This document shows positions 3,571-64,000 of a stretch of DNA of 64,000 nucleotides, piece after piece. The stretch is from assembly GCA_965649825.1 (NCBI GenBank), contig OZ287703.1, positions 248,001 to 312,000 of the forward strand, in the 5' to 3' direction. A program made the translations under genes and the position numbers. The notes below the pieces were generated by a model. It had not been told where the DNA came from. It was given only the letters and a program-made list of their open reading frames with translations, and did no database searches. Positions within the stretch are counted from its first letter, which is position 1, and each line of letters opens with the position of its first letter. Origin of the DNA: Penicillus capitatus. Its lineage: Eukaryota > Plantae > Chlorophyta.

Positions 3571-6500
3571 CGAAATGATCGAGCTCCGGTTCGTCGACTG
3601 CCGTCGAACCGATTTTTTAGCTTGCCAATTTACATCAGTTTGAGATGTACGTGAATCTTATGATCGACCACAAGTCGAATTGTAAGCGCACTGTCCTTGT
3701 TGTAGAGTGTATCAATACCACCAAAACCGGCGAAAAGAACGATTTCTGGTTCAACTGCATACTGTGGTAAACTGATTTTGTTTTAACAGCCAGTTTTTTC
3801 GTATATGCACTATGAACGCCAACGGTGACAAATGGCAAATCGAAGAGATAGTCGAGGTTTCATCGAAAGCCAAGGACACAGTGATAAAACCTTCCCTAGA
3901 CTTTTCGAAGCTCCGCAGTTTCACAACCTTGTCGTTCAGACACACAGAAACGTAAACGACGACGAAGGCGTATCGTTTGCAAAGACTGTTGAAACGTCTG
4001 TAGTCTGGAATTACGGCCAGGTACGAACTAAAACGTCTTATCAAACGCACTAAGATCGTTCTCGGCCTCTCCCTAGTCATCTGCGCGAAGCTGGATAGCT
4101 GTCTTGTGACGCGCAGAATGTGTGCGGTACATAACCTCAAGCTGTACTCATTCTTTTTCAAAGGCCATGGAACATAAACTTGTTTTAGCAACTCGACAAC
4201 TGCAGATATATTAGCCGTTGTCACAACTTTCTAATAACGAGAGAACAAATTCCACGTGACGGAGATGTCTAAAATGACTTTACAACATAGATAGTTGAAT
4301 TCTTACAAACAGCGAAGCGATGCTTTTCAACAGTCACCCTCGTCGGAATAGAATGAGAACCCAGACGACTGGCCTTAATCGAGTTCTTCGGGTTCGATAT
4401 CGATCTGTTCGACTGCATTGATTGACTGAGTTTCGATTTGCTCGATTGTCGTCGATCGATTTCGGTCTGTCAGATATCAATTTGTTCGATTGCCAACAAT
4501 CGACGAAGTTTCGATTCGTCTGATGGCTGTGGATGAAGCTTCGAGACATTCGATCGCTATCGAACGACGAAGTCTCAATCGAGCGCATTCGGAATGAGAT
4601 CGGACAAGCTTGATGGCCATGTTATGACAGGTTTCGATAAATTGCGATTCGATCGTTTCTAATATCGCCGAATCTTAGCGACAACGATTGAATCAGCAGT
4701 CCCTGTGCTTTGTCTCAGTTCTTGTCGCGTCGATCGCAGAGATTTCTACGAAGAATGCTCTATCATCATCACTATCGGCAGGCGATCCGCGCACAGAGTC
4801 GGATATAAATCCACTTCAAAGCAGAAATCCATGCAACGTTCTCTTTTTTACCATTGGTATACATATGGTATCCCTACGCCTGACATATGTGCACATTCGT
4901 CTGCCTCAGCCGCCTTCTGCCATGTACCGTTTTTGGTCTCTGTCGATTCGAGCGATGGTTTGAGAACAATGCCGCCCCGCTGGACGGAACGACACGTACA
5001 TCTGGTAGATCAGACAGTGTCCATCATTGCTCCGCACTCTGAAAAGGAGGAGAACGTCGAGGTGCTTTTGAAGAGAGATAAGCTCATGCATTACCTGGAT
5101 ACTGTCAAGTACTCTGTGGAGGATCCGAAATCGCTGACGGAAACGTCTGGGTTGCTCTTGGCCAGTGTACTGCGTCTTTCTCCTGTAGAGGATGGATGCG
5201 GAGTAGTTGGATTCGGTCAGTACTTATCTGAGGAGCGCATTCCCGCGGAAGCGTAGACGGACTGATGTTCGTTTTGCGACATCGAGTGCATCTCGTCTCC
5301 AATGTCCCTGACAGCGACGTCCACGTCTGACTCCGCGTCATCATCATCCGCTTCGACCAGGCTGTCAGCGTCTTTCGTCCACTCGTGCAGTAGAAACAGC
5401 AGCACGAACGAAAGCGTCACTTTGGAGACGTCACTGAAGAAAGATGTTGCTCTACGGTCTGCTGCTTGCTCTGCTGACATGGGTGGCGACGCGTGTCCTC
5501 TGGCGACGTCTGCGATACGACCTCCACAAGATACCCACGCCACGCGGACTTCCTCTTTTGGGTCAGACGCTGCAAGTGATTAACACGATCCGAGGTAACG
5601 ACGAAGAGAGTTTTCTGCGTGCCCGCTGGATGCGCGAACTTGGATTTCCCAAGATCATGAGGGTGAGCGATTCGTTTCGAGAGATGGTTGATGGTTGAGT
5701 CAATGTATGGCAGGTGACCGTCTTCGGCTTGCCGCTTTTGTCGATAACCGACATGCGCTGCGCGAAATCCGTCGTGCTCTCTCGGACTGCACCGTTTGAT
5801 CGCACTACGCTCGTCCAAAGTACATTAAAAATCGTGAGCTCTCGTTTTTGCATTTGACGCGCCTAGAAGGTTCTTCTATAGCTCGTAGGCCTAGATTCTA
5901 AAGCGCTATTTCTATTTGGGTCGCCCTCTGTGTCACCTTATGTCAACGCCATACGCAAAGAGTATGCATCCGCCATGCAAACCAGCAACCTCAAGAAGAC
6001 GTGGCCTTCGTTACTGAAACTCCTGAACCAGCTGGTCATCATAATCGACGAACGCAGGATCGATGGACCCATAGATGTCCAGAGCCTTTTTGTTCAGCTC
6101 GCTCTGGACGTCATTGGTATCGTGGCCTTCGAAATGACGCTGGGAGGATTGGATGGCACTTGCAGCATACCAGAATTGTTGATCGAGGTCGGGCATATCC
6201 AGAAAGAACGACTACTCGATCCCATAGCAACAACATGTTACAAACTCTTCCCTCGCTTGGAAGGAGCGAGGAAGAGGCAGAGAGCGATCGACCGTCTGAG
6301 ACATGAGTACGAAAAGATCACTAAAGAGATGCTCAAGAGGGAAGCGCCCACAGACGGTTCTCGCCCACTCTGGTTCGGACTGCGAAGTTTTCAGCATCCA
6401 GAGACAAAAGAGCCTCTGTCTTACGAGAGTCTAAAAACCGAGCTTGGGGGCGTCATTCTCGCAGGGGCAGACACGACGGCACATCAGATCGCTTGGATCT

Positions 6501-7379
6501 TGGCGGCATTGGCCGAGCATCCCCGTGTCGTCGACAAGATCTTGGAGGAGCTCAGGGAACGAGGCCTCTACGGAGACGGATCAAGGGAGGTCGTGTTTGA
6601 AGATCTGGGAGAATTGGCCTACCTGACAGCCGTCATCAAGGAAGGCATGCGCTTTGTTGCCATAGTCACGAGGACCGTACCTCGTGTGGTTCCGCACGAC
6701 ATGACGCTGATGGGGTATCGAGTCCCGAAGGGCACTCTTGTGGTCATTCCGGGTAATCGTTGGATTGGAACGGAGAAGGAGTGGGGCGATCCCGAAGTCT
6801 TCCGACCGGAGCGCTGGTTGACCGGTGAAGACATGTCTCATGTGCACTACCTTGGATTCTCTTACGGCCCGAGGGACTGTGCCGGGCAGAAACTGGCCAT
6901 GATGGAGATGCGCTTGGTCCTCATCAAGCTGCTCGCCCAGTTCCGTTTCGAAACCGCCATACCATTCGATGAACTGATGCTTCACGGGAAGAACGGTTTG
7001 GCCATTGAATCGGCGATAGGGATCCCGCTCAAAGTGAGTCCGAGAACGGCGAGTTGAAACGTCATTGTTTTTGGCCGAAAGGCACGTCTTTTATTTTTGC
7101 ATTATTTGTTGCCATCAACGATTCTGTCGTTTGGCAATGTCATGGGCAATGCATGCCTGAAAGCACGTGCTGTGCGAACTCTCTTTAAACCATCGCAGTG
7201 AGAACCAGAACATCGTCCTCGCATATCGCAGGAATGGTCAACGATCGAACTAGTCGATCGCAATCGAAGACAGCTCGCGGAGATTTGGCGGCCGATAAGG
7301 GTCGAACGTGGTGAAACCTAGGCATCCGTGTACATCGTGGGCAGTGAAAATTGCTGATCGACGATATTAGCAACAGCCA
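3571..7379. repeat. Left arm of ~3.8 kb inverted segmental duplication (partner 32075-35874)
   Basis: Reverse-complement matches at both ends (TTCGTCGACTGCCGTCGAACCGATTTTTTAG near 3590 vs 35825-35855; the 7340-7379 segment vs 32075-32114). Paired ORFs throughout (3751-4224/35221-35733, 4334-4588/34857-35111, and the P450s). The outer boundary decays gradually. Confidence 0.95.
5444..7057 (+). CDS. Cytochrome P450, ER-anchored (copy A)
   Basis: N-terminal TM helix plus Pro-rich hinge (KIPTPRGLPLLG), I-helix AGADTT, K-helix EGMR, PERW and heme motif FSYGPRDCAG. Introns 5663-5713 and 5834-5881. Confidence 0.95.
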
Positions 7380-8548
7380 GATCTTCAGCGACTTGCTTGT
7401 CTAATGTATCGGATCCCAACTCGTGCGGGGATAGTTCTCGTTCGAAGGCTGCCGGTTTCCGATTGCATTGTCACTCTGTTTTCTCTCTGTTTCAGTCTAA
7501 CACCTTTACCTCTCAGTCATCGTGACAAAGCGATCGTCGTTCTTCGTGGATTTCGAAAGAGATGGACATTACCTGATCGAGACAATCACGTTCGGCAACA
7601 ATCTAGTGCTGTATCTCTCCGATGTCAACGACTCCCATCCACCACGGCAGAGTTGCGACCATAAAACATAGCGAATCGAGCGAAAGTCAGAGAACCGATT
7701 AAATTGTCGTAACATAACAAATGTGATGACAAGACTCGATAAGACGTTCGGAAACTTCCGCTTCTCTTTCGAACGACTGTCTGAGAAAGGGTTCTCATGA
7801 AGAGACACTTTCTTCAGAAATTCTGCGTTCCGAAGAACGCAGCGCGGCTTTGGATATGGTATTGATCGTGAGTCGTACCTCAGCTTAGCTTCATTGGTTG
7901 CGAAACTGCCCCAAGCGAAAGGATGACGTTACCAGATAGACTATATAGGCTAATGATGAAACTTCCGCTTCTGTTTTGTCGGGTTGGGAGTGTGGCGCAG
8001 AGCGCCTTCAAAAATTGTGAATACAGCTTTGTTAGCGACGAAGCTCGGTATTCGTTAGTACTGATATGCTTTGGAATTATTTACGCGTAGTCGTGGTCCT
8101 TTCTCGCAAATACTGAACACTTTTTAAAACAGCTGGTGTTTGTTTTCAAGAACCCCCTTTTATAATCTAACATGACGTTATGATTCTCGTCATGTTGTCG
8201 TCATGCTCATCGTCATGTTGTTGCTTCCTTGGTCGTTCGTTCTTCGGCCTGACAGTACTGTGGCGCAAAGCGCCTTTGAAAAAGGTTAATACGGCTTCCA
8301 TTTCCATCTAGCTCGACGCAGGCGGCCGTTCACCGTGCGGAGCTCCGCTCGATAACTGCCGATGCTACATGCATACACACACAGAGGATAGGGTAATGTG
8401 CGTACTTTGACTCCGGCAGTAGGTCGACAGTTCCTCTGGTAAACCTCAGAATCCTTCTTCGAGAAGAACAACGGAAAGAAAGGAATTACAGACGCTTCGA
8501 AACACGCGTTAAATAGTTCTGTGTTGTAGTAGATGCGTCTGATCCGAA

Positions 8549-8788
8549 GACGGATGGCGCCGCGGATGGCTCGAGATCCGACGGATGGCGCCGCGGATGG
8601 CTCGAGATCCGACGGATGGCGCCGCGGATGGCTCGAGATCCGACGGATGGCGCCGCGGATGGCTCGAGATCCGACGGATGGCGCCGCGGATGGCTCGAGA
8701 TCCGACGGATGGCGCCGCGGATGGCTCGAGATCCGACGGATGGCGCCGCGGATGGCTCGAGATCCGACGGATGGCGCCGCGGATGGCT
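8549..8788. repeat. Perfect tandem minisatellite, 31-bp unit GACGGATGGCGCCGCGGATGGCTCGAGATCC x7 plus a 23-bp partial
   Basis: Read directly from the sequence. No differences seen between units and no spacers. Confidence 0.97.
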
Positions 8789-9484
8789 GTCATATCAGGA
8801 AGCGGACAGCCTGTCCGGTCCGCGGGGCCGTAACCGTTGTCGTCTACCCGTCAATACCACATGCATGGCCGTTTCCAAGCGACTCTCTCCTTCAAGCAAC
8901 TAATCGACCACGCTGTCTTTCGTGCCTCTGCCTATTCTCTAACTTTCTGCACGATCTGATCCGGGTCCGTTAGCGACCGGTTCTCCCCAAGCCTTATCAA
9001 GAATACACGCTTTCTCCTAGATGTAGCTTCACGAGTGAAGAGATTTAGAGTGAAAGGATCTTTAGAGGACCCGCCCATGTCTGGCGAGGCCTTCGAACAC
9101 GACGATAGAGTGAGAACACTATTGTTCGTGTCACGGCCGAACAAAGACTTCGCATAGGAATAGATCGAGTCTTAACGGACTGCATCGTGTCTTCTATCTC
9201 ACCTTATTACGAGGCTTACACCTCACTGATAAGTTCAAAGCGCACGCGCATCACCTTCTATGGCACACCACATGTACAATATGCAGCACTCGGGACAACG
9301 ATCGGAGAACTGTGCGCTCTCTTCAGGCACATGAAGATAACTATCCTAGAGTGCACAAGTCATTCGATATGTTCGATTGCATCTGGCGTTCTCGATTGTT
9401 TGATCACTCAACAGGTTTCAATTACTCGCCACTGAGTTATTTACAGCATCGATTCGCACTGATAGCGCGACTGCGTTTTGCGCC

Positions 9485-10753
9485 ATGAGTCGACCACGAT
9501 CGTCGACAGCTGAGTTAGCTGTCTTGATCGACGGTTTCTATGATGACTTTGAATCGCATCCGGCCGAAGTGGACAGCCCTTCTCCGACGGCAGATGTTAA
9601 CGAATCGGCGGCGGACATGCACGCGACAGACGAGGCCTTGCCGCCAACACTGGATTCCGCTAGACAAGTGAACGAACTCATTCTGATTCGCGTCCCGACA
9701 CTGGAAAAAATGTTCTCAACAGATGAATCACGACCTCACAGAGACACATGAGAACCTTTGCCGTCGAGCAAAGATCGTTTTGCAGCAGCGTGCACAAGGA
9801 CGACAGCGACCGGTTTTCGATGCGTCCAAGCTAAACGAAGCAGAAGCACGTTTTAGAGCTTGCCTAAAGCTCCACCCACAGATCCAACAGGAAAAAGCAG
9901 ACAACGCAAACCGTTATCGCGAAAGAATCTGCGATCTTCAGAAAGCCTCTCCTCACATGCGGTGCTGTATCAAATGGTTATGACGTCTGTTGTAGTTGCG
10001 ACGTCAAGGAAGAACAGGTGTCAAAAATCCGAAAGACGTTCACACAGTTTTGCGTTGATATCGCACACAAGCACTTTGAGGACGATCGACCGGCGATGAA
10101 AGTACATACATAGTGTGGCAGTAAAGACGTGTTCGATCCGTGACCGGCCTCGGCAGACTGTGCAGACTTTGTTAGAAGAGGAGAAGACGGTTGCACAAGA
10201 GATGGAGGAGAAGAGACTGGAGAGCATCGCGATGGAGAGTCAGAGACGTCTTCTTGAGAAGAGGATGAATGACCGCGATTGCCTGGGCGATGGACTGCAT
10301 TTGATGGACTTTGAGCAACTGAAGATCGAAAACCAGACCCTTCACGAAAAGATCGATGAGCGTCATCATGAGCTCATGCAGTTGAAGAAGAAAACAGGCA
10401 CTGCTGTTCAGGTTTCTTGATCGTATGCGCGGATGAGCCACACGTGGATGGCCTCTTAATAGGTTTTGACACATGTTTGTGAGAAACGTCACTTCGTGGC
10501 CGCCGAGATCGACGCAAAGAAATCGCTATTGAATGATGATGATGAAATCATGTCTGAGCAGAAGTCGCGACTACAACAACGAAAGCTTTGTTGCACCTTG
10601 ATGCAGCGTCAAAAAACATATCTCGACCGCCATTGCTCAAAAGTGGTGGACAAAGCGCTTCTCGACGATATCCAGAGGCTTAAAACAATCAAAGTCGCAT
10701 TGCTAAAGCAGTTGGCCCATTTGCGGGACCAATTCACTTCTGTTCATGTATGA
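9485..10753 (+). CDS. CCDC96/CFAP184-like (DUF4201) ciliary coiled-coil protein
   Basis: Diagnostic GLHLMDFEQLKIENQTLHEKIDER...KKKTGTAVQ-VLTHV. Five exons can be joined through short GT-AG introns. Confidence 0.85.
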
Positions 10754-11560
10754 AATGCTGAACACATTTCTTTGATCCGCCACGCTTTCCAAATTTGTTT
10801 GTTTCTTGCTTTTTTAACTATCTAACATCTTTTCTAAGGACAGCAACAAATGAACGGTATTGACAGCTCAGATCCCTTTCCCGGTTTATCATTTGAGAAA
10901 AGTTCCGATCATTGTTAATTGTTGTTCGTCATACACAGCACATCCAGCAACGATGTCGAAGCTGCGACATCATTGCCAGACGCGTATGGAGTTAGTTGGT
11001 TGGGTGTTTAGCACAAAGCATTCTTGATCGACGAAATGTGAAAGAATGCTCAGGCCTGAGATATCGTGGAGTTATTAGGCAAGCTTAATCGAGGGCAAGC
11101 ATAATAAAACAGCATGAATAAGAATACGAAATCTCATCACGCCCTGGCAGAATATAAGGCAGAGGGCTTTGTTTCGATCAGAAATTGATACAAAGACAAA
11201 AATGACAAGAGCTTCCTTCATCAGTCATTGTGTGCAAGAGGTCTTGAGGACGGTGTTTAGAGCTAGGCTTGGTATGTCATCTAAACTCTCGTCTATATCA
11301 ATCCGCTCGCACAGAGTGACAATCAAACTACGAGAGACTGGAGCTCTCGCCCCGTCGTGGCAGCTATCTATCATCAGAGATGCCGAGACGGACAATCGCA
11401 AGGGGAAAATTCATCAATTCGAGGAAAGTAATGATAAGGAGTGTGACGGATACCAAAGAACAGAAATAAGGACTCAATCAATCACCGTGGAGATCTCTCT
11501 TTATTGTAGCTTGTTGTGCACACACATTTATTTTCTCTTAAGAAAAAGTTGTCTTCATCC

Positions 11561-12319
11561 TCATGTTTTCTGTCTGTACTTACTGAACCCAGACTTCGCG
11601 ATTGAGGCACCTATCAAGAAACACACGGCGGCAGCGGAGACAGCTCGTTTCACCCACTTCACTCTTCGACCTGCACTTTCCTGCCCTTCTGTCTCAGAAA
11701 CAGCGCTCGTGGTGGATGCACGCACCTATCCAACACCCGTCCGTCCGTCCATCAGATCGAACATCTCAAGCATGACGGCAGACATTACCTGCAACGTGCG
11801 TGCTGAACTAAAATTGACTTGAAATAGGTGTTCATTTGTGCGTGCGTCTCTGGTCGCATGCAACACGGGCAAGGATTGCACATAGTTGACCAAAGACTGC
11901 AAGATCTGTCCGTCCCTATCAGAGACATGGAGAAGCTCATCGACCCGCTGCTTCAACGCTTCGTTGATCGTTTGGTATATCTCAACAGACGACTTCATTA
12001 GTTTTACGTAATCTATCACACTTAACAGCTCACTCGGACTCTACAGGCGATAGACCTAACGGACGAGAATGATATGGACACTGCGCACCACTTCTGCTAC
12101 GGTCTCATCCGAGGCATCGGAAATCTCTTTGATAATTCTTCTAGCGGCATCGTTCCATTGGTCTAGCGCGAATTGCTGCCTCAAGATGCATTCCTCCTTC
12201 TGCTGGGTTGAAACGGCGTCGTCTGTTGGTGACCGTCGGCATCGATGCTGCAAGGCGCGGCGATGTGCTGAGGTCTCGACACTACGCGACGTGCATGCTC
12301 GCTCTGTATGGCCCAACAT
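11561..12319 (-). CDS. Hypothetical helical protein with a C-terminal hydrophobic segment (tail-anchored candidate)
   Basis: ORFs 12056-12319 and 11726-12019 can be joined. Intron 11726-11788 leads to a last exon ending ...AVSAAAVCFLIGASIAKSGFSKYRQKT*. No family recognised. Confidence 0.5.
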
Positions 12320-12466
12320 GCTGATATCGTCCCGTCGAAATCTGTGCTAATCTTTGTCTGTCTGTTGGTATATACAATTGAACGAACGACCCCGCAAACA
12401 GTACAAGCGAAAATCTCTCGATTCCAGTGAAATGCGACCATTTGACCCGCGTAGCGTACAGACCAT

Positions 12467-13460
12467 ATGTCGAGTCGAGTCGTTACACAGTGGCCATCGT
12501 TCTTTCCCGATCAACTCCAACGCGTCACTTCGCTATCGGCACTAAAATGTGCGAAAAGGTATCGACGCGAAGCCATGTATGTCCCATGTCTAGAACGGGA
12601 CGTGCCGACGGCGCATATCCCACCAGCACGGAGAGATGCAAGCAAACATCCCGTCTGCTTCTTGCATGGCTTCGATAGTTCGAGCCTCGATTTTCGAGAA
12701 TTGCTGCCGTACGTCGAAGACCGTTGCGAAGCCTGGGCCGTCGACCTCGTCGGTTGGGGATTCTCAGATCACTCCCTCTTCGTCAATGATCCATCGCTTC
12801 CCAATGGTCCCGATGTCAAGAAGGAGCATCTCTATGCATTCTGGAAACAGTCCATCGGACGACCGATGTGTGTCATGGGGGTCTCCTTGGGAGGCGCAGT
12901 GGCGATCGATTTTGCCTTGACCTATCCAGAAGCTGTCAGCACTCTTGTTCTGTCAGCTGCTCAGGGGTACACTGATGGTCTCGGAGTGCTCTCACGTGTC
13001 CCTTCCTTCGTGGCGAAGCTCGGTGTGCAGATCCTTCAAACTGAGGCACTAAGACGAGCGGCAAATACGATGGCATACCACAACAAAGAGATCGATATCG
13101 AACAGGCCATGACGATCGGCCGACTCCACACACTTTTGCCAGGTTTCATCCTCGAATACTATGTAAGGACGGGTGTTGTGTCGAGATATCTGTTTAGGGT
13201 GGATGGAAGCTTCGTTGGCTTTCATTCGGAGCGATGGCTACTCTTTGAGTGACAAGATTTCGTCCATCGATGTTCCGACACTCGTTGTCTGGGGAAGAGA
13301 GGATCGTGTGCTCGGGACAGCACCGGCTGAACGATTTGCATCGGATATCGCAGATGTACAGCTCCGATGGATCGAGGCCTGTGGTCATGCCGGACACATA
13401 GAGCAGTACCAACAGCTGGGCGATCATCTTTTGACATTTCTCGAAGAAAGGATTCCGTAA
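12467..13460 (+). CDS. Alpha/beta-fold hydrolase
   Basis: FLHGFDSS, AVDLVGWGFS, nucleophile elbow GVSLGG, VVWGREDRVL and CGHAGHIE. Intron 13143-13197. Confidence 0.92.
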
Positions 13461-22069: not shown

Positions 22070-25000
22070 TTACTCGCAGATGCTCTTTCTTCTTCGCCGT
22101 TCCTTCCTGTCTCGCACCACCGTGGCAATGGTGGATAGAATTCGGCTTTCGACATGGTCTGCAGTGGAGACGGGAAGGATCACGGGATCCGAGGGACCGG
22201 CGACAGCTTCCGAGACATCCTGCTTGAATGCCTCCGTCTCTACGACGGTGGCAATCTGCGTCTCTTCAATGCCACGTTCCATGCTCTCCCTCGGTTTGTA
22301 AGCAGACAACTGCGAATTGGTACCTCGTCCGCGACTGGCCCACTTCATATGCTTCTTTCCGGTGGGCGTCGACAGAACGACGGAATCTTTCGTCGAGGGC
22401 GGCGCGATGACAGACGACGGATTACGAATACCAGTGCCCGTAACGTCCGCCGTAGGACATCCACTCATCAGATCGGCACGTGCAGCCATGTAACGAATCG
22501 CCTGTTCCAGTTTGAATTTTTCTCTGCTCAGGATGGTGTACTGCTGTCGCATTTCCTCCAGTTCCGTCTTGAGTTTCAGGTGATACTGGATCTTCTGCTT
22601 AGAGTTGTGATGACCCAGCAATGATCCGGAAGACTGCATAAGACCTGTCACATCAGCATTGAGCTGCTCCGAGCGTTTGTGAAGGTGCAAGTTCTCTTCT
22701 TCCAACCGCTGGACCTCCAATCGCATGGCATCGCTGTTTCGCAGCTGATGACGATACTGCGCAGCGAGTTTTTGCGATTCGTTCACTTTCCGTTCAGCTT
22801 CGCGCAGAGCCTCTTTGAGAATATCGACTTCATCGAGATCTTCATCAGCAGATGCGTTGGTTCCCTCGAAGAATGCTAAACGGTCTTTCGCCTCGCGTAG
22901 CTGTTCTCGAAGCTGTTCGTTCTGCTTTCGAGTGGAAACCGCGACAGCTTGAGCGGCAGAGACTTCCGAGCGGAGCTCCTTGATCGATGTCGGCTCCAAT
23001 TTTAAGGCCCGAATCTGAGACTCGTATCGCTTCTTCTGCTGATGCAGCAAAGCACGCAGTTCGTTCTCCGTACCACTGGCAGCATGGCGATCCTCCTGTC
23101 CCGCATCACCCGCTCGTTCTTTCAGCTGCGCCAGTTCCCGTTCGAGTCTCTGGAGCTTCTTCTCACGCTCGGCGAGTTTTGCCTTGGCACTCGCGGCTGC
23201 TTGTTCCTGCTCGCGTGTGATTTCCGTATTCTCCTGTTTCAACGCTTTCACCTGCATCTGTAGATCCTGAACCAGTTGCGCCTTCTGTCTGGCCTCGTTC
23301 TCGGCCTTCACCAATCGAATCTCTGTCTTCTGACTCGCACCTTTGGCCGTCTCCGTACTGCGCGCAGCATTATTCATCTCTGATTGCATCTCGCGAATCT
23401 CTTCTTCGCGTTCCTCGAGCGCCTTCTGCACGGAAGCGAGTCTCTTGGCCAGTTGACCTGAATTCTTCTCCGTATTCGTGTGTGTCGTGTCTAACTGAGA
23501 TTCGAGTAAGCGTTTTTCGGCTCCGAGTTTGGCGAGTTCTTGCGTCTGTGAGGCAACGGTGGACTGTGCATTCTTGTAGGCTGTCTTACTTCGAGCCAGC
23601 TTCTCCTCCACTTCCGCTTTCTGCTTCAGCGTCGACTCCACTGTCTCCTCTGCCTTCTTCCTGCTCTCCACTGCCTTGGCCAATCGGCTCTCCACTTTGG
23701 ACAACTCCTTTCGCATTTCCGCTGCCGCTTCTTCTTTCTTCTTGCCGTGCTGCTTCGATTGCGAAAGATCCTTCTTGCATGACTCAAGCGTTGTCCGAAG
23801 ACTATCGCGTTCTTTCCCGAGTTTATTCAATTGTTCCTGCAGAACGGATAATGTACTACCCTTCTCTCCCACATTGTTTCCCAGTTTCTGGACCTTCTGT
23901 TGAAGTCCCTGGACGGCGGCATGACGCTCAGCGAGTTCGACCTTCGTGGCCTCCAATTCCGATTGCAACTCAGCCACTGTCTGAGCTCGCGTCGCACCTT
24001 CGGACTCATGTACTTCAGCTGCCTTGACGAGATCCTCATTCGTTGCTTGGAGTTCTGCAGCCTCCACTGTCTTTTCGCCCAACTGCAGACGCACCATCTT
24101 CAGTTCGTTCTGCATGTTGGCACGGATCTCCGTGTCCTCTGCCATCTGGGCCTGAGCTGCATCTAGCTGCTGGCTATAGGAGTTGATGGTGTTCTCCTGT
24201 TCGGCTAAGGATCGTCGCAGCGATTTTTCTTCTTTCTTCTGACGCTCGAGTTCACCGACCTTGGCTTTCTTCTCCTTCAAAACCGTCGCGACTTTGTTGC
24301 TCAAATGTTTCAATTCGCTAGCCTACAACACACAACAACCTGTATCACCACCACCCATCGCTACTAAGCAATTATCCAACTTGGGTTTCGGTCAGCTTTT
24401 CGAGCTCGGTGAATTTGGTTTGACGGTCCGTTGCCACCTGCGTGAATTTTTCGAGTTTCTTGCCAAGATCTTGCTCCTCTTCGTCATTAAATTCTCCCCC
24501 GAATGACTTGGTGATGCTCTCCACTCTGCTTTGCAGCATGAGCACGTCTCTATCTTTGGATTGAAGATTCTCTTTCAAGGCAAACATCGTCGCTTCCGCA
24601 TCCCTTAGCGAGTCTTGTGAGGTTTGTTGATCGTTCTCCATTTTTGTGAGTTTGGTTTCAAGCTCTTGCACAAACTGATCACGGTTTCTCAACTCTGCCT
24701 CTGCAACAGAAAGCTCTTCCTGCAGCGACGCCAGCTGTTTTGCTTTTTGGTCGTTTTCCTCGCGCATGTTCCTGAGTTCCTCTTCCAACTCTGCCTTCTC
24801 CTGGAGAATAACCTCAAGTCGTTCCTTCAGTTCCTGAATCTCAGCACGAAGCTTCGCAACAAGCTCCTCTGATTCTGTTTCGCGCTCCGCGGCAACGGTG
24901 AGCTCGGCTTTCAGGACAATGATCTGTGCATAGTTTTCCGAGATGAGACGCTCCGTTGCGGATTTACTGGCACTCAATTCCTCTTCGAGAGCAGCCAGTT

Positions 25001-26044
25001 GTTCCTGTTGGACGTTACTCAGTGCCTTCATGTCGGCAAATTGTGTGTTAAGGGAGTCCTGCGATTCGGATTTCCGCGAGGCGGACGATTCGGCCGCGGC
25101 TAGCCGCTTCTTGAGTGCCTGAATTTCTTTTCTTTGCCTATCTTGATCTTCTGCGTGGTCTTCTTCCATATTCACCATCTGCTTCTCTAATTCCGATAGT
25201 CGCTGTTTCGCATCGCTCACTTTCGCTTCGGCAAACTTACGACTCTCTTCAGATTTTTTGACTCTCATGTTCATGTTGGCTGCAGCAACACACAACCTGT
25301 CACATCAACACCGTAACCAACAACGTCCTCACACACCAAGCTCATTCTCGAGTTTCTTTTTGTCGGTTTGGATTTTGGTGTGTTCCCGCTGCGACTGTGC
25401 AGTGAGTGCCTTCTGCTCGAGCAGCTTGTTCTTGATATCGCGCAGCTCAGTCTACAGTCAGACAACGAAGCATCTTAGTATAAGAGTGAGAAAAGGGCAG
25501 CAACGAACGTCGAGTTCGGCTCTTCGCTCTGGACTCATGCCGGATTCGCGGATGACTTGTTGAAGCTCCTACATGACATTCGGCCATCATCGCGTCTGAC
25601 GCCTAGCCGTTGCGAAGATACCATGATTTTGGCTTTGGAAATGCGGAGCTCCGTTTCCAAGTCTTTGATTCTGTTTGTCGTCCAGTCGGTCGTGCGCGAA
25701 CCCGGTCGCGACGGAATCCGTCTCCTTGGTGACGTGGACATACCGCCCGAGCCATCTACCGCACCACACGGCAGACCCTTAAATGCCGTCTGAACCGTCC
25801 GGCGTGCATCGTCTTACCCTCGTTGACGCTGCTCGAAAATCGGCCAGAGCCCTTAAAACCTGACCGCGGGTCTACCTTGTACCCGACGTCACCGAGGTGG
25901 TTTGGGTCGTAGTCTCCTGGACCTACAACGCCCGACGTGTCCATGCGCTGTCACAATGATGCCCGCCGCGTCGTGGCCTAGGCAAGATGCACCTGGCGAT
26001 GGTAAGTGTGGCCGAAAACGTTCGCTTTTGTCGCGGCCGAACAT
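22070..26044 (-). CDS. Long coiled-coil protein with HMMR/RHAMM-like N- and C-terminal motifs and no motor domain
   Basis: Spliced N-terminus MFGRDKSERFRPHLPSP-GPGDYDP...GFKGSGRF, more than 1000 aa of E/K/Q/L heptads, and C-terminal LLGHHNSKQKIQYHLKLKTEL. Confidence 0.8.
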
Positions 26045-32074: not shown

Positions 32075-35000
32075 TGGCTGCTGCTAATATCATCGATCAG
32101 CAATTTTCACTGCCCACGATGTACACGGATGCCTAGGTTTCACCACGTTCGACCCTTATCGGCTGCCGAATCTCCGCGAGCTGTCTTCGATTGCGGTCGA
32201 CTAGTCCGATTACTGATGATTCCTGCGATGTGAGAAGGACGATGTTCTGGTTCTCACTGCGATGGTTTAAAAGGAGTTCGCACAGCACATGCTTTCAGGC
32301 ATTCATTGCCCATGACATTGCCAAACGACAGAATCGTTGATGGCAACAAATAATGCTAAAATAAAAGACATGCCTTTCGGCCAAAAACAATGACGTTTCA
32401 ACTCGCCGTTCTCGGACTCACTTTGAGCGGGATCCCTATCGCCGATTCAATGACTACACCGTTCGTCCCACTGAGCATCAGTTCATCGAACGGTATGACG
32501 GTTTCGAAACAAAACTGACTGAGCATCTTGATGAGGACCAAGCGCATCTCCATCATGGCCAGTCTCTGCCCGGAACAGTCCCTCGGGCCGTAAGAGAATC
32601 CAAGGTAGTGCACATGGGACATGTCTTCATCGGTCAACCAGCGCTCCGGTCGGAAGACTTCGGGATCGCCCCACTCCTTCTCCGTTCCAATCCAACGAGT
32701 ACCGGGAACGACCACAAGAGTGCCCTTCGGGACTCGATACCCCATCAGCGTCATGTCGTGCGGAACCACACGAGGCATTATCCCCATGACGATGTAGGCA
32801 ATCCGCATGCCTTCCTTAATGACGGCTGTTAGGTACGGCAATTCTCCCAGATCTTCGAAGACGACCTCTCTTGCGCCGTCTCCATAGAGTCCTCGTTCCC
32901 TCAACTCCTCCAAGATCTTGTCAACGACACGGGGATGCTCGGCTAGAATGGAGAAGAGCCATGCGAGCTGATGCGCCGAGGTGTCTGTTCCAGCGAGGAT
33001 GACAAGCGCAACCTCGGCTCTGAGGCTATCATATGACATCGGCATTTCTGTCTCTGAATGGTAACGGTCTCGTAATCCGAACCAGAGTGGGCGAGAACCG
33101 TCTGTCGGCGCTTCTCTCTGCAGAATCTCCTTAGTGATCTTGTCGTATTCGTGCGTCAGACGATCGATCGCTCTCTGCCTCTTCCGTGCGCCTTCCAAGC
33201 GAGGGAAGAGTTTGTGGCATGTCGTTGTGATGGGATCGGATAGTCGTTCCTTGAAAATGTGGCCGACCTCGATCAACAACTCTGGTATGTTGCAGGTGCC
33301 ATCCAATCCTCCCAGCGTCATTTCGAACGCAACGGCTCCAATGACGTCCAGAGCAAACCGAACAAGGAGGTGCTGGAGGTCTATGCCTTCTTTGGTTCCG
33401 TGTTCTTCAATTTTGACGGCCAGTTGGTTGGTGGCGTTCATTAACGACGGCCACACCTTCTTGAGATTGCTAGTTTGCATGGCGGATGCATATTCCTTGC
33501 GTATGGCCTTGACATAAGGAGACACTCTTCTCTCTCCCGCCAGATGTGGAGCTTTGGAACTCAGCCCTAAGAGCTATTACACGTTCTTGCCATTGCTGAA
33601 AGCAAACAACGGGCTCTCACGATTCTTGTCGCTCTTTCGGGGGCTTTAAAGCGAGGGAACGCTTCAGACCTTGAGAGTACGATGGATTTCACACAGCGCA
33701 TGTCGGTTATCGTCAGAATCGGCGAGCCGAAGACTGCCACCTGCCAGAAACTGCATAAACCATCTAGAGAAGCGATCAGTTTACTCTGAAGATTTTGGGA
33801 AATCCGAGTTGGCGCATCCAGCGTGCACGCATAAAACATTCTTCTTCGTTATTTCGGATTATGTTAATCATGTCGAGCGTCTGTCCCAAAAGAGGATATC
33901 CGCGCGGCGTGGGTATCTTGTGAAGGTCATATCGCAGACGTCGCCAGAGGACACGCGTCGCCGCCCATGTCAGCAGCGCAAGCAGCAGACCGTAGACCAA
34001 CATCTTTCTTCAGCGACGTCTCCAAAGTGACGCTTTCGTTCGTGCTGCTGTTTCTACTGCACGAGTGGACGAAAGACGCTGACAGCCTGGTCGAAGCGGA
34101 TTATGATGACGCGGAGTCAGACGTGGACGTCGCTGTCAGGGACATTGGAGACGAGATGCACTCGATGTCGCAAAATGAACATCAGTCCGCCTGCGCTTCC
34201 GCGGGAATGCGCTCCTCAGATAAGTACTGACCGAATCCCATCCCTCTGCAGCTATCCTCTCTAGGAGAAAGACGCAGTACACTGGCCAAGAGCAACCCAG
34301 ACGCTGCCGTCAGCGATTTCAGATCCTCCACAGAGTACTTGACAGTATCCAGGTAATGCATGAGCTTATCTCTCTTCAAAAGCACCTCGACGTTCTCCTC
34401 CTTTTCAGAGTGCGGAGCAATGATGGACACTGTCTGATCTACCAGATGTACGTGTCGTTCCGTCCAGCGGCGGCATTGTTCTCAAACCATCGCTCGAATC
34501 GACAGAGACCAAAAACCGGTACATGGCAGAAGGCGGCTGAGGCAGACGAGTGTGCTCATATGTCAGGCGTAGGGACACCCGACGTATACTGATTGCGGGA
34601 AAGAGAACGTTGCACGGATGCAGAGCTGCAAGTGATTTAGATCCGACTCTGTGCGCGGATCGCCTGCCGATAGTGATGATGATAGAGCATTCTTCGTAGA
34701 AATCTCTGCAATCGACGCGACAAGAACTGAGACAAAGCTCGGGGGCTGCTGATTCAATCGTTGTCGCTAAGATTCGACGATATTCGAAACGATTGGATCG
34801 CAATTTATCGAAACCTGTTATAACATGGCAATCAAGCTTGTCCGATCTCATTCCGAATGCGCTCGATTGAGACTTCGTCGTTCGATAGCGATCGAATGTC
34901 TCGAAGCTTCATCCATAGCCATCAGACGAATCGAAACTTCGTCGATTGTTGGCAATCGAACAAATTGATATCTGACAGACCGAAATCGATCGACGACAAT

Positions 35001-35874
35001 CGAGCAAATCGAAACTCAGTCAATCAATGCAGTCGAACAGATCGATATCGAACCCGAAGAACTCGATTAAGGCCAGTCGTCTGGGGTCTCATTCTATTCC
35101 GACGAGGGTGACTGTTGAAAAGCATCGCTTCGCTGTTTGTAAGAATTCAACTATCTATGTTGTAAAGTCATTTTAGACATCTCCGTCACGTGGAATTTGT
35201 TCTCTCGTTATTAGAAAGTTGTGACAACGGCTAATTTATCTGTAGTTGTCGAGTTGCTAAAACAAGTTTATGTTCCATGGCCTTTGAAAAAGAATGAGTA
35301 CAGCTTGAGGTTATGTACCGCACACATTCTGCGCGTCACAAGACAGCTATCCAGCTTCGCGCAGATGACTAGGGAGAGGCCGAGAACGATCTTAGTGCGT
35401 TTGATAAGACGTTTTAGTTCGTACCTGGCCGTAATTCCAGACTACAGACGTTTCAACAGTCTTTGCAAACGATACGCCTTCGTCGTCGTTTACGTTTTTG
35501 TGTGTCTGAACGACAAGGTTGTGAGACTGCGGAGCTTCGAAAAGTCTAGGGAAGGTTTTATCACTGTGTCCTTGGCTTTCGATGAAACCTCGGCTATCTC
35601 TTCGATTTGCCATTTGTCACCGTTGGCGTTCATAGTGCATATACGAAAAAACTGGCTGTTAAAACAAAATCAGTTTACCACAGTATGCAGTTGTACCAGA
35701 AATCGTTCTTTTCGCCGGTTTTGGTGGTATTGATACACTCTACAACAAGGACATCACGCTTACAATTCGACTTGTGGTCGATCATTAGGTCCAGCTGCGT
35801 CTCAAACTGAAGGAAATTGGCACGCTAAAAAATCGGTTCGACGGCAGTCGACGAATTATAGATCGCTCATTTCG
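32075..35874. repeat. Right arm of ~3.8 kb inverted segmental duplication (partner 3571-7379)
   Basis: Reverse complement of the left arm. Noncoding tracts are near-identical and interrupted by diverged blocks. Confidence 0.95.
32398..34003 (-). CDS. Cytochrome P450, ER-anchored (copy B, paralog of 5444-7057)
   Basis: Same three-exon structure as copy A. AGTDTS, EGMR, PERW and FSYGPRDCSG are present and the ORF is intact. Confidence 0.95.
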
Positions 35875-61449: not shown

Positions 61450-62557
61450 TCAGGCATTGAAGAGCAATAGAGATGCGGCCATTACGGCCATGCCGACAAA
61501 AACACTCCATGTGACGTATTTGTCTTCCGGATCATACATCAGCGCCGTCGGTATCAATTCTCGCACAGAGATATATACCATGATTCCGGCGACGAGGCCA
61601 AAGAGAACAGCATACGCCAGATCTCCCATGTTCGAGAGCACCACCCATCCAAAGATGGCGCCAATCGGCTCAGATACACCGGAAAGGAATGCCCAGAAGA
61701 ATCCCCACTTTCGAGATTTCGTGGCGTAGAACACCGGCATCGCCACGACGATGCCTTCTGGGATATTGTGCAGAATGATGGCGATGGCGACCGTCGCACC
61801 AGCCGTTGGATCTGCCAGAGTTGCGACGAAGGTGGCAAGACCTTCTGGAAAGTTGTGCAGCGCAATGGCCAAGCCACTCATAATCCCCACACGTTGCACG
61901 TGCTGGACATGCGGATCTTCGGCCATTGCTCTTTCGCAACTTTGTGCACCGCATGGATCCACAGAAGAGGACTGCAAACGCGACAAATTCTGTTTGATGA
62001 CAAGACGGCTACAAATGGTTGTGTACCTGATGACGGACAGTGCCCATTTCCATATCCTCACAGGCTGTATCTTTGACAGGGAGTTGCATTTGCGGCTCGT
62101 GCTTCGTGAGCTCTTCCTTTAGAGAAGGATGGTGGCCATGGTCGCAGAAAAAGTGGACCATGGCATTTAGAATGGCTGTGAGACTGATGCCAGCGAAGAA
62201 ACATAGTGTGGCATATCTCATGGCCTCGTTGTCGCTGTATCCGTGGTCTGTAAAATCGTCGACCGACTTGATAAGGAAGATCTCGCCGAAGGACACGTAT
62301 CTAGCGATTGGCCTCCGTCAAGGCGGACGAGCACAAAGAGAGGTACGCGTACATCATGACGCCGGCAGAAGATCCGAGAGCGACAGCGAGGACACGTTTG
62401 TCTGCCAGTCTCGTGCAAAACGTCAACGAGGCACCGATGAGGGTGGAGAATCCCGCGGCGATGACCAGTCCAAACGCCAACGCCACGTCCGAGCCAGTCT
62501 CGAGACCCTATACATACACCGACTCCCAATTTTCCGAAGCGTCTCTCACAGTACCAT
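61450..62557 (-). CDS. ZIP-family metal transporter, ZupT/ZTP29 type (copy 1)
   Basis: AGFSTLIGA, SAGVMM-YVSF, ALHNFPEGLATF, ILHNIPEG, SGVSEPIGA, MVYISVRELIP. The first coding exon appears to be only the ATG (62555-62557), followed by a 47-nt intron. Confidence 0.93.
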
Positions 62558-63802: not shown

Positions 63803-64000
63803 CTACAAGCTGAAAAGCAGCAAAGAGGCAGCCATGACTGCCATACCGATAAAAACGCTGGCCGTTACGTACTGATCGTTTGCATCAAATTTCAAGGCCG
63901 TTGGAATGAGTTCCCGAATCGAAATGTAGACCATCATGCCTGCCACGACAGCAAACATGATGGCGTATGCCAAGTCTCCCATGTTCGAGAGCACCAGCCA
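63803..64000 (-). CDS. ZIP-family transporter (copy 2, 3' end only; the rest lies beyond the window)
   Basis: LSNMGDLAYAIMFAVVAGMMVYISIRELIPTAL...GMAVMAASLLLF is clearly paralogous to the C-terminus of copy 1. Confidence 0.88.
   Translation of the reverse strand, partial: WLVLSNMGDLAYAIMFAVVAGMMVYISIRELIPTALKFDANDQYVTASVFIGMAVMAASLLLFSL

Follow-up and report, generated by a model that had tools for sequence, protein, structure and literature searches.

Mosaic divergence between two inverted cytochrome P450 paralogs in the green alga Penicillus capitatus

The stretch of DNA analysed here (the window; 64,000 nt from Penicillus capitatus, assembly GCA_965649825.1, contig OZ287703.1, positions 248,001 to 312,000 of the forward strand) contains two cytochrome P450 genes, copies A and B, situated in the arms of an inverted repeat. 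The two copies are nearly identical at their edges and strongly divergent in their middles. They probably represent a patchwork formed by non-reciprocal recombination among at least five paralogs, in which the edges of older copies have been homogenised, the middles have stayed old, and differences within the old core follow ordinary P450 constraint; a rough probability of 0.6 is given to this reading. That the paralogs on this contig, at least five in number, exchange tracts by gene conversion is itself well supported.

Young and old segments in the two genes

The elements compared are listed below, with positions counted from the start of the window. L003 and L004 are loci in related genomes, described further on.

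3571-7379, forward strand: inverted-repeat arm A (3.8 kb), with a stretch free of open reading frames (ORFs), a remnant of a Methyltransf_33 (MT33) gene, a P450 gene and 322 nt of 3' flank
5444-7057, forward strand: P450 copy A, with exons 5444-5662, 5714-5833 and 5882-7057 and introns of 51 and 48 nt; intact, 504 aa, GT-AG splice model with an open frame
35874-32075, reverse strand: inverted-repeat arm B, in the ancestral context, with P5CR upstream and ~1 kb of downstream sequence in common with L003 and L004
34003-32398, reverse strand: P450 copy B, with exons 34003-33785, 33740-33621 and 33573-32398 and introns of 44 and 47 nt; intact, 504 aa
7380-32074, no strand assigned: spacer between the arms (24.7 kb), carrying, inverted with respect to B, genes that in related genomes come directly after the single P450

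The coding sequences of A and B align without an indel, and the arms differ at 400 positions, which form a structured mosaic. A two-state hidden Markov model (HMM) of the A/B alignment, with states of ~2.4% and ~24% divergence, separates young tracts (3660-4804, 4871-5184, 5209-5541, 6680-6928, 7003-7218 and 7259-7379; 1.8-3.3% divergence) from old tracts (3571-3659, 4805-4870, 5185-5208, 5542-6679, 6929-7002 and 7218-7258; 18-37%). With respect to the gene and its substrate recognition sites (SRSs), these tracts are arranged as follows.

3660-5541, forward strand: recently homogenised 5' tracts, 1.8-3% divergence, covering 187 nt upstream of the ATG and codons 1-33, with old islands at 4805-4870 and 5185-5208
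5542-6679, forward strand: old unconverted core, 1138 nt, 23.7% divergence, covering codons 34-378 and both introns, with SRS1-5 and a block in helices D and E; counterpart in B at ~33905-32776
6680-6928, forward strand: recent A/B conversion tract, 2.8% divergence, encoding beta-sheet 2, the PERW motif, the haem-binding loop and the first part of helix L
6929-7002, forward strand: old island of 74 nt, 21.6% divergence, synonymous divergence (dS) 0.53, encoding the last part of helix L and the greater part of SRS6, with unique derived states in both copies
7003-7379, forward strand: recent A/B tract that takes in the final 18 codons plus the 3' flank and is interrupted by a small old island (7218-7258)

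The non-coding flanks of the two arms are 97-100% identical, with 98% identity over the 187 nt before the ATG. The introns, which lie in the old core, are 65% identical (intron 1, 51 vs 44 nt) and 71% identical (intron 2, 48 vs 47 nt); an initial annotation of this DNA, made from the letters alone, had given the lengths and heavy divergence of intron 1 correctly. Between A and B, dS is 0.16 in codons 1-33, 0.45 in codons 34-165 and 0.60 in codons 166-378, falls to 0.045 in codons 379-461, rises again to 0.53 in codons 462-486, and is 0 in codons 487-504. Since synonymous and non-coding sites show the same contrast, the segments must be of different age, which implies gene conversion. Old islands also occur in non-coding DNA (4805-4870, 5185-5208 and 7218-7258), with sizes and divergence like those of the coding ones, and two old tracts (3571-3659 and 4805-4870) are in arm sequence that the other paralogs lack.

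In 6722-6927, where the initial annotation had estimated about seven substitutions by eye, two of them synonymous, there are exactly 7 mismatches (6746, 6751, 6756, 6825, 6838, 6881 and 6891). Assigned by codon position, they are five replacements (I402V, N405T, G428D, A447S and K450R) and two synonymous changes. For 6680-6928 as a whole, the 5 replacements and 2 synonymous changes accumulated since the last homogenisation correspond to a ratio of replacement to synonymous rates (omega) of ~0.8, a value based on small numbers, and A447S falls directly after the haem-ligand cysteine in B.

The same contig carries at least three further members of the family, namely L001, the intact L006a and L006b, which has an in-frame stop, for a total of at least five paralogs with A and B. 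In a second sample (ERZ26696514; ctg303800 and ctg303791), both loci are found on two parallel contigs, giving L002-L005 (L003 vs L004, L002 vs L005); these parallel contigs may be haplotypes, subgenomes or two strains. When A, B and L001 are compared as a triplet, the numbers of sites with the patterns A=B, A=L001 and B=L001 are 46:5:8, 51:3:7, 19:4:3, 12:0:0 and 114:8:8 in the flanks (the last being the 3' flank). The A=L001 pattern leads in 5882-6100 (31 vs 12 and 21), and the B=L001 pattern dominates 6301-6679 (58 vs 14 and 19). This heterogeneity along the gene is highly significant (chi-square p=1e-47), and trees of adjacent segments give conflicting sister pairs at 74-99.5% bootstrap.

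Codons 34-113: B and L001, 87%
Codons 114-187: A and L001, 74%
Codons 188-270: B and L001, 85%
Codons 271-378: B and L001, 97%
Codons 379-461: A and B, 99.5%
Codons 462-486: A and L001, 78%
Codons 487-504: A and B, 99.5%

Individual exchanged fragments were assessed with a simplified Sawyer-type permutation test of our own. An A-B fragment at 7006-7056 is significant (p=4e-4), as is a B-L006a fragment at 6411-6511 over the I-helix (3 discordant among 41 polymorphic sites, p<2e-4). The strict form of the Sawyer test, which allows no mismatches, overlooks the tract at 6680-6928 because this tract carries seven later substitutions; the HMM and the site patterns do capture it. The proposal in the initial annotation that older copies had been homogenised by gene conversion is thus upheld by the contrast between flanks (1.8-3%) and core (24%), by the conflicting trees and by the heterogeneous site patterns, and the tract detection suggested there as a check returned the HMM tracts together with these two fragments.

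The cores of the two copies have different affinities. When the trees are rooted with distant homologs, 94% of bootstraps place codons 271-378 of A outside the other six copies, and the I-helix states of A (ELG, WILA.LA), which are common with the distant homologs, are ancestral. Codons ~240-350 of B belong to the lineage of the L001/L006 array: over 6240-6606, B and L006a differ by 5.4%, as counted from the alignment. Across the rest of the core, A and B are each 13-38% from every sampled copy. A search of 5.8 billion proteins, supplemented by a cluster look-up, returned no donor of either core closer than 5.4% to that of B or ~15% to that of A. Only P0001-P0007 exceeded 70% identity to A in the search, and the look-up added L006a, L006b and P0244. 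In the core segment designated core2, paralogs from the same genome (L001-B, dS 0.32; L005-L003, 0.21) are closer than positional orthologs (L001-L005, 0.61), so that the whole family evolves in concert.

Fold, substrate recognition sites and constraint

Copy A matches Pfam PF00067 with an expectation value of 9.9e-59 (199.7 bits, cut-off 22.8), and precomputed matches to the same family are present on the last-exon proteins of both copies. Both have ExxR, PERW, an FxxGxRxCxG cysteine loop and an I-helix AGxDT(T/S). In A, these are the helix K E367-GM-R370, P422-ERW, the haem loop F439-SYGPRDC446-AG and the I-helix A307-GADTT; in B, the cysteine is followed by CSG and the I-helix motif is AGTDTS. 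The AlphaFold2 (AF2) model of A (predicted local distance difference test score 89.7, predicted template modelling score 0.90) contains the canonical P450 helices A-L. Its Foldseek neighbours include CYP3A5 (5veu)/CYP3A4, CYP97C1 (6l8h) and P450 BM3 (TM score 0.74-0.85, probability 1.00). Fold and motifs (ExxR, PERW, cysteine loop, AGxDTT) are therefore CYP3/CYP97/CYP102-like, although A shares at most 23% identity with any solved P450. Of named relatives, the protein search gave only an Ostreobium P450, at 30% identity. The usual rule for CYP families is 40% identity, and by this rule the protein appears to fall outside every named family. Both copies are intact and belong to an uncharacterised green-algal P450 family, which is small and evolves fast.

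The SRSs were placed at residues 99-130 (SRS1), 209-226 (SRS2), 240-252 (SRS3), 297-318 (SRS4), 371-381 (SRS5) and 478-489 (SRS6). These limits derive from what are taken to be the residue ranges of CYP3A4, which were transferred via a HMMER alignment to CYP3A5 and checked against the AF2 secondary structure. The four pairs of peptides quoted from A and B in the initial annotation are exact, but its statement that the copies differ almost only in SRSs fails. Differences are present at 112 of 504 residues (77.8% identity), 71 of these differences (63%) are outside the SRSs, and dS is 0.45-0.60 across codons 34-378. A cluster of 19 differences, with omega ~1.0, is found in residues 153-186 (helix D, the D-E loop and the start of helix E in the AF2 model), which are on the surface. 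The differences are nevertheless not uniform, and in this respect the initial annotation stands: 41 of 108 SRS residues differ, compared with 71 of 396 others (odds ratio (OR) 2.8, p=1.8e-5), and the enrichment is also seen inside the old core (OR 2.0, p=0.005). The part that fails is the near-exclusive placement of differences in the SRSs, most of them being elsewhere.

The six sites vary considerably. SRS1 differs at 20 of 32 residues, SRS2 has two differences and SRS3 has none; pairwise omega between A and B is 1.04 for SRS1, 0.18 for SRS2, 0 for SRS3, 0.30 for SRS4, 0.78 for SRS5 and 0.44 for SRS6. For all core SRSs together it is 0.45, compared with 0.19 for the non-SRS core, and in codons 226-270 it is 0.06, with a dS of 0.75-1.0. 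No window or SRS gives a pairwise omega clearly above 1. Among the seven paralogs, 17 of 24 hypervariable sites (at least four states) are in SRSs (OR 10, p=1e-7), and the SRS5 tetrapeptide is different in all seven. Relaxed constraint would also give an enrichment of replacements in SRSs, and the pattern inside the core is of the kind that relaxed or diversifying constraint gives in P450 families at large.

Several differences occupy positions predicted to line the pocket. The position aligned to I301 of CYP3A4 is Gly303 in A and Leu303 in B. Residues 376-379 are TRTV in A and MGIM in B, and the part of SRS5 aligned to CYP3A4 369-373 reads I-V-T-R-T-V in A and I-V-M-G-I-M in B. Differences at these positions and in SRS1 make different substrate binding plausible, and, judging from the sequences, A and B probably differ in the substrates they bind or in how they orient a single one.

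Origin of the mosaic

The edges (from the 5' flank and promoter region to codon 33, then codons ~380-461, and finally the last 18 codons with the 3' flank) coalesce very recently, at 2-3% divergence; in the preferred reading, the middles were presumably already different at that time. Conversion needs long near-identical stretches, and a segment diverged by ~20% would no longer be converted. Heteroduplex rejection may thus have blocked conversion of the middle after it passed roughly 15-20% divergence. Within the old block, the structural core would have been strongly purified, and SRS1, SRS4, SRS5, SRS6 and the surface D/E helices would have been free, or driven, to change; such ordinary P450 constraint would produce the SRS-enriched pattern of amino acid differences. 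The distance between B and L006a (5.4%) and the remaining core distances (13-38%) exceed the 2-3% divergence of the flanks, so that, given the available donors, the cores would already have differed. For the same reason, older copies with homogenised edges are favoured over a recent duplication of the whole arm followed by imports.

Several points weigh against this reading. The searched collection contains no donor for the core of A, which was either kept old or imported from a lost or unassembled paralog. The single P450 at this locus in related genomes favours a lineage-specific and possibly recent duplication. Flanking genes have a dS of 0.25-0.55 between genomes, similar to that of the A/B core, so that an old duplication in situ would need an age close to that of the species split. 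Moreover, heteroduplex rejection is an assumed mechanism, and all distances are Nei-Gojobori/Jukes-Cantor values on a recombinant alignment.

It is possible, though a good deal less probable, that an inverted duplicate of the entire 3.8-kb arm arose ~2-3% divergence ago, perhaps together with inversion of the spacer, and that the middles were then overwritten by ectopic conversion from donors that are partly lost or unassembled. At the locus that corresponds to the window by synteny, the related genomes (L003, L004) carry one P450, and B retains its ancestral neighbours on both sides, so that A is the derived copy. Derived indels are common to the A and B flanks, exchange of a tract between B and L006a is directly evidenced, and the five or more copies on the contig exchange tracts freely. 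However, the nearest relative of the B core is 5.4% away at best, and 13-31% over 5664-6163, and those of the A core are 15-29% away. As these distances are greater than the 2-3% of the flanks, the donors would need to be unsampled. The old islands at 3571-3659 and 4805-4870 also have no known third-party donor.

The history of the spacer bears on the duplication. The ancestral neighbours are not kept at A, and the genes that follow the single P450 in the relatives (CCDC113-like and abhydrolase; 9449-12790) now follow A, so that the spacer is inverted relative to B and the duplication is tied to its rearrangement. This inversion may have originated with a duplicated breakpoint, or by flip-flop between the arms. 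Even at word size 7, the DNA downstream of A (7380-9448) has no homology to that downstream of B or to the intergenic DNA of L003/L004, and a simple staggered-break origin of the inverted duplication is consequently not demonstrable.

A tentative explanation of similarly low probability is a strong form of the one offered by the initial annotation, namely that conversion repeatedly sweeps the whole gene and that selection removes every tract that overwrites specificity residues in the SRSs, so that the differences left standing would mark the determinants of specificity. Young coding tracts hold only 6 of 108 SRS residues, with a borderline circular-shift test (23/504); the 74-nt old island between young tracts covers SRS6, and the boundary at 6679/6680 immediately follows the hypervariable SRS5 tetrapeptide. 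Hypervariability at SRS sites extends throughout the family, and the same idea has been published for primate CYP2D (PMC4419802). However, the old core is continuous, including introns and conserved codons with saturated dS, equivalent old islands are present in non-coding DNA, and omega nowhere rises above about 1. Divergence in the D/E-helix block, which lies far from the active site, equals that of SRS1. The SRS4 of B, whose protein sequence is identical to that of L006a, lies within the exchanged fragment at 6411-6511 and was itself converted from L006a, so that SRSs are not generally shielded. Tract ends, being set by the last mismatch, also tend by construction to run into the mismatch-rich SRSs. 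Selection protecting specificity residues is therefore not shown, and a neutral divergence barrier would account just as well for the survival of the core.

An assembly artefact, in the form of mis-joined haplotypes or a chimeric contig, is highly improbable: the contig is from a 30x assembly and the second sample has two parallel contigs per locus, but each arm has unique flanks of its own with interpretable synteny, the 400 differences between the arms form a structured mosaic, and both genes are intact. Least credible of all is a history without conversion, in which a recent duplicate diverged rapidly in its middle through adaptation or mutation. This would account for the mid-gene, SRS-enriched differences but is ruled out, for a recent duplicate with an adaptive middle, by synonymous (dS 0.45-0.60) and intron (65-71% identity) divergence as high as that of replacement sites, and is further opposed by the grouping of each core with a different third paralog and by a three-point branch omega of ~0.28 for A.

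The methyltransferase partner, the surrounding DNA and known systems

Elsewhere, members of this P450 family are preceded by an intact Methyltransf_33 gene, forming a two-gene cassette. In the window, only 3' remnants of this EasF/EgtD-like gene are present, detected by tblastn with the intact MT33 proteins of L001 and L002; both P450s are intact although the local partner is dead.

4887-5203, forward strand: MT33 3' remnant in arm A, residues ~263-367 of 378, with a frameshift
34559-34248, reverse strand: MT33 remnant in arm B, the counterpart of that in arm A
L001, 4368-5504, 10056-11195 and 12290-13350: coordinates given for MT33-P450 cassettes
L002, 4128-5321: the same
L005, 4055-5248 and 8213-9400: the same
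L006, 8001-9350 and 11394-12521: tandem members on the same contig as the window, L006a being intact (504 aa)

A 23-nt deletion is common to the two remnants and absent in the other paralogs. In L006b, the in-frame stop replaces Trp408 (PGTR-stop-IG), and this copy is either a pseudogene or affected by a sequencing error; in the core, pairwise identity among L006a, L006b and L001 is 92-100%. L003 and L004 are 97-99% identical over ~200 nt of upstream sequence and the first P450 codons, and 69% identical around SRS1. In this region, patches look exchanged between loci, with L004 resembling L002 and L003 resembling L001. Intron 1 of L004 contains an insertion of ~280 nt (aligned to window position 5713) that is absent in all other copies, and intron 1 of L002 appears to be GC-AG.

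It is conceivable, although unlikely, that the MT33-P450 cassettes are combinatorially diversifying enzymes, in which conversion moves whole SRS modules between paralogs and so creates new active-site combinations for specialised metabolism, possibly of N-methylated aromatic amino acids. Such moves may include SRS1 between L004 and L002, SRS1 between L003 and L001, and SRS4 between B and L006a, with A keeping an otherwise extinct module. A literature search for a pair of EgtD/EasF-type methyltransferase and P450 in algae found nothing relevant.

Other features of the window are less directly related to the P450 genes. The ORF-free 1.3 kb of the arms (3571-4880 and 34576-35874) is 98% identical between them; only short pieces are homologous to the region upstream of L003/L004, and the other paralog loci lack the stretch, which may be regulatory, a decayed gene or the relic of a mobile element. 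A tandem repeat (8549-8788), ~1.2 kb beyond the downstream end of arm A, consists of 7.7 copies of a 31-nt unit at 100% identity, and degenerate copies widen it to 8487-8819. In the spacer, a CobW-domain protein has its nearest relatives in Bryopsis sp. and other green algae (50-61% identity); with its introns of ~50 nt, the DNA is taken to be from the nuclear genome of a eukaryote, a green alga whose nearest named relative is Bryopsis. On the reverse strand at 22070-25295, long ORFs for a coiled-coil protein rich in Lys, Glu, Ala and Gln produce a strong AT/GC skew (22-26 kb); the 747-aa ORF has no Pfam match, and an adjacent ORF has only a weak GAS-domain match. Finally, a direct repeat of 190 nt (61458-61647 and 63811-64000; 71% identity, 2.35 kb apart) reaches the end of the window.

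Near-identical arms and an invertible spacer are also features of the human Y-chromosome palindromes, in which intrachromosomal conversion keeps the arms uniformly ~99.9% identical. The window resembles these palindromes in having inverted repeats, a spacer and near-identical non-coding arm sequence, but differs in its mosaic arms, its 24%-diverged centre and the contributions of third-party paralogs. Among P450s, the vertebrate CYP1A1 and CYP1A2 studied by Goldstone & Stegeman (2006) are reportedly an old duplication in which segments have been homogenised by conversion, with divergent segments that include SRSs. In primate CYP2D6, CYP2D7 and CYP2D8, which are likewise homogenised by conversion, non-SRS sequence clusters the paralogs and SRS residues separate them, a pattern that was interpreted as constraint on substrate specificity (Yasukochi & Satta 2015, PMC4419802). 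Homogenised paralogs with distinct SRS residues are thus common to CYP2D and to A and B. However, the unconverted part here forms one 1.1-kb block and not separate SRS patches, the copies are inverted with 24.7 kb between them instead of lying in tandem, at least five paralogs occupy several places on the contig, and the family is uncharacterised and hosted by a green alga. The same differences in block and geometry set A and B apart from CYP1A1/CYP1A2, and the algal enzymes are known from sequence alone. The pattern is already published for CYP2D and, reportedly, for CYP1A, and would not surprise a P450 specialist.

What the locus provides is a clean example, from outside the animals, of conversion and constraint shaping a young P450 family, in which identical regulatory and 3' regions are joined to old and different catalytic cores. 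As natural chimeras, A and B are suited to SRS swaps. The repeated linkage of this uncharacterised green-algal P450 family to EasF/EgtD-like methyltransferases makes the pair a candidate cassette for specialised metabolism.

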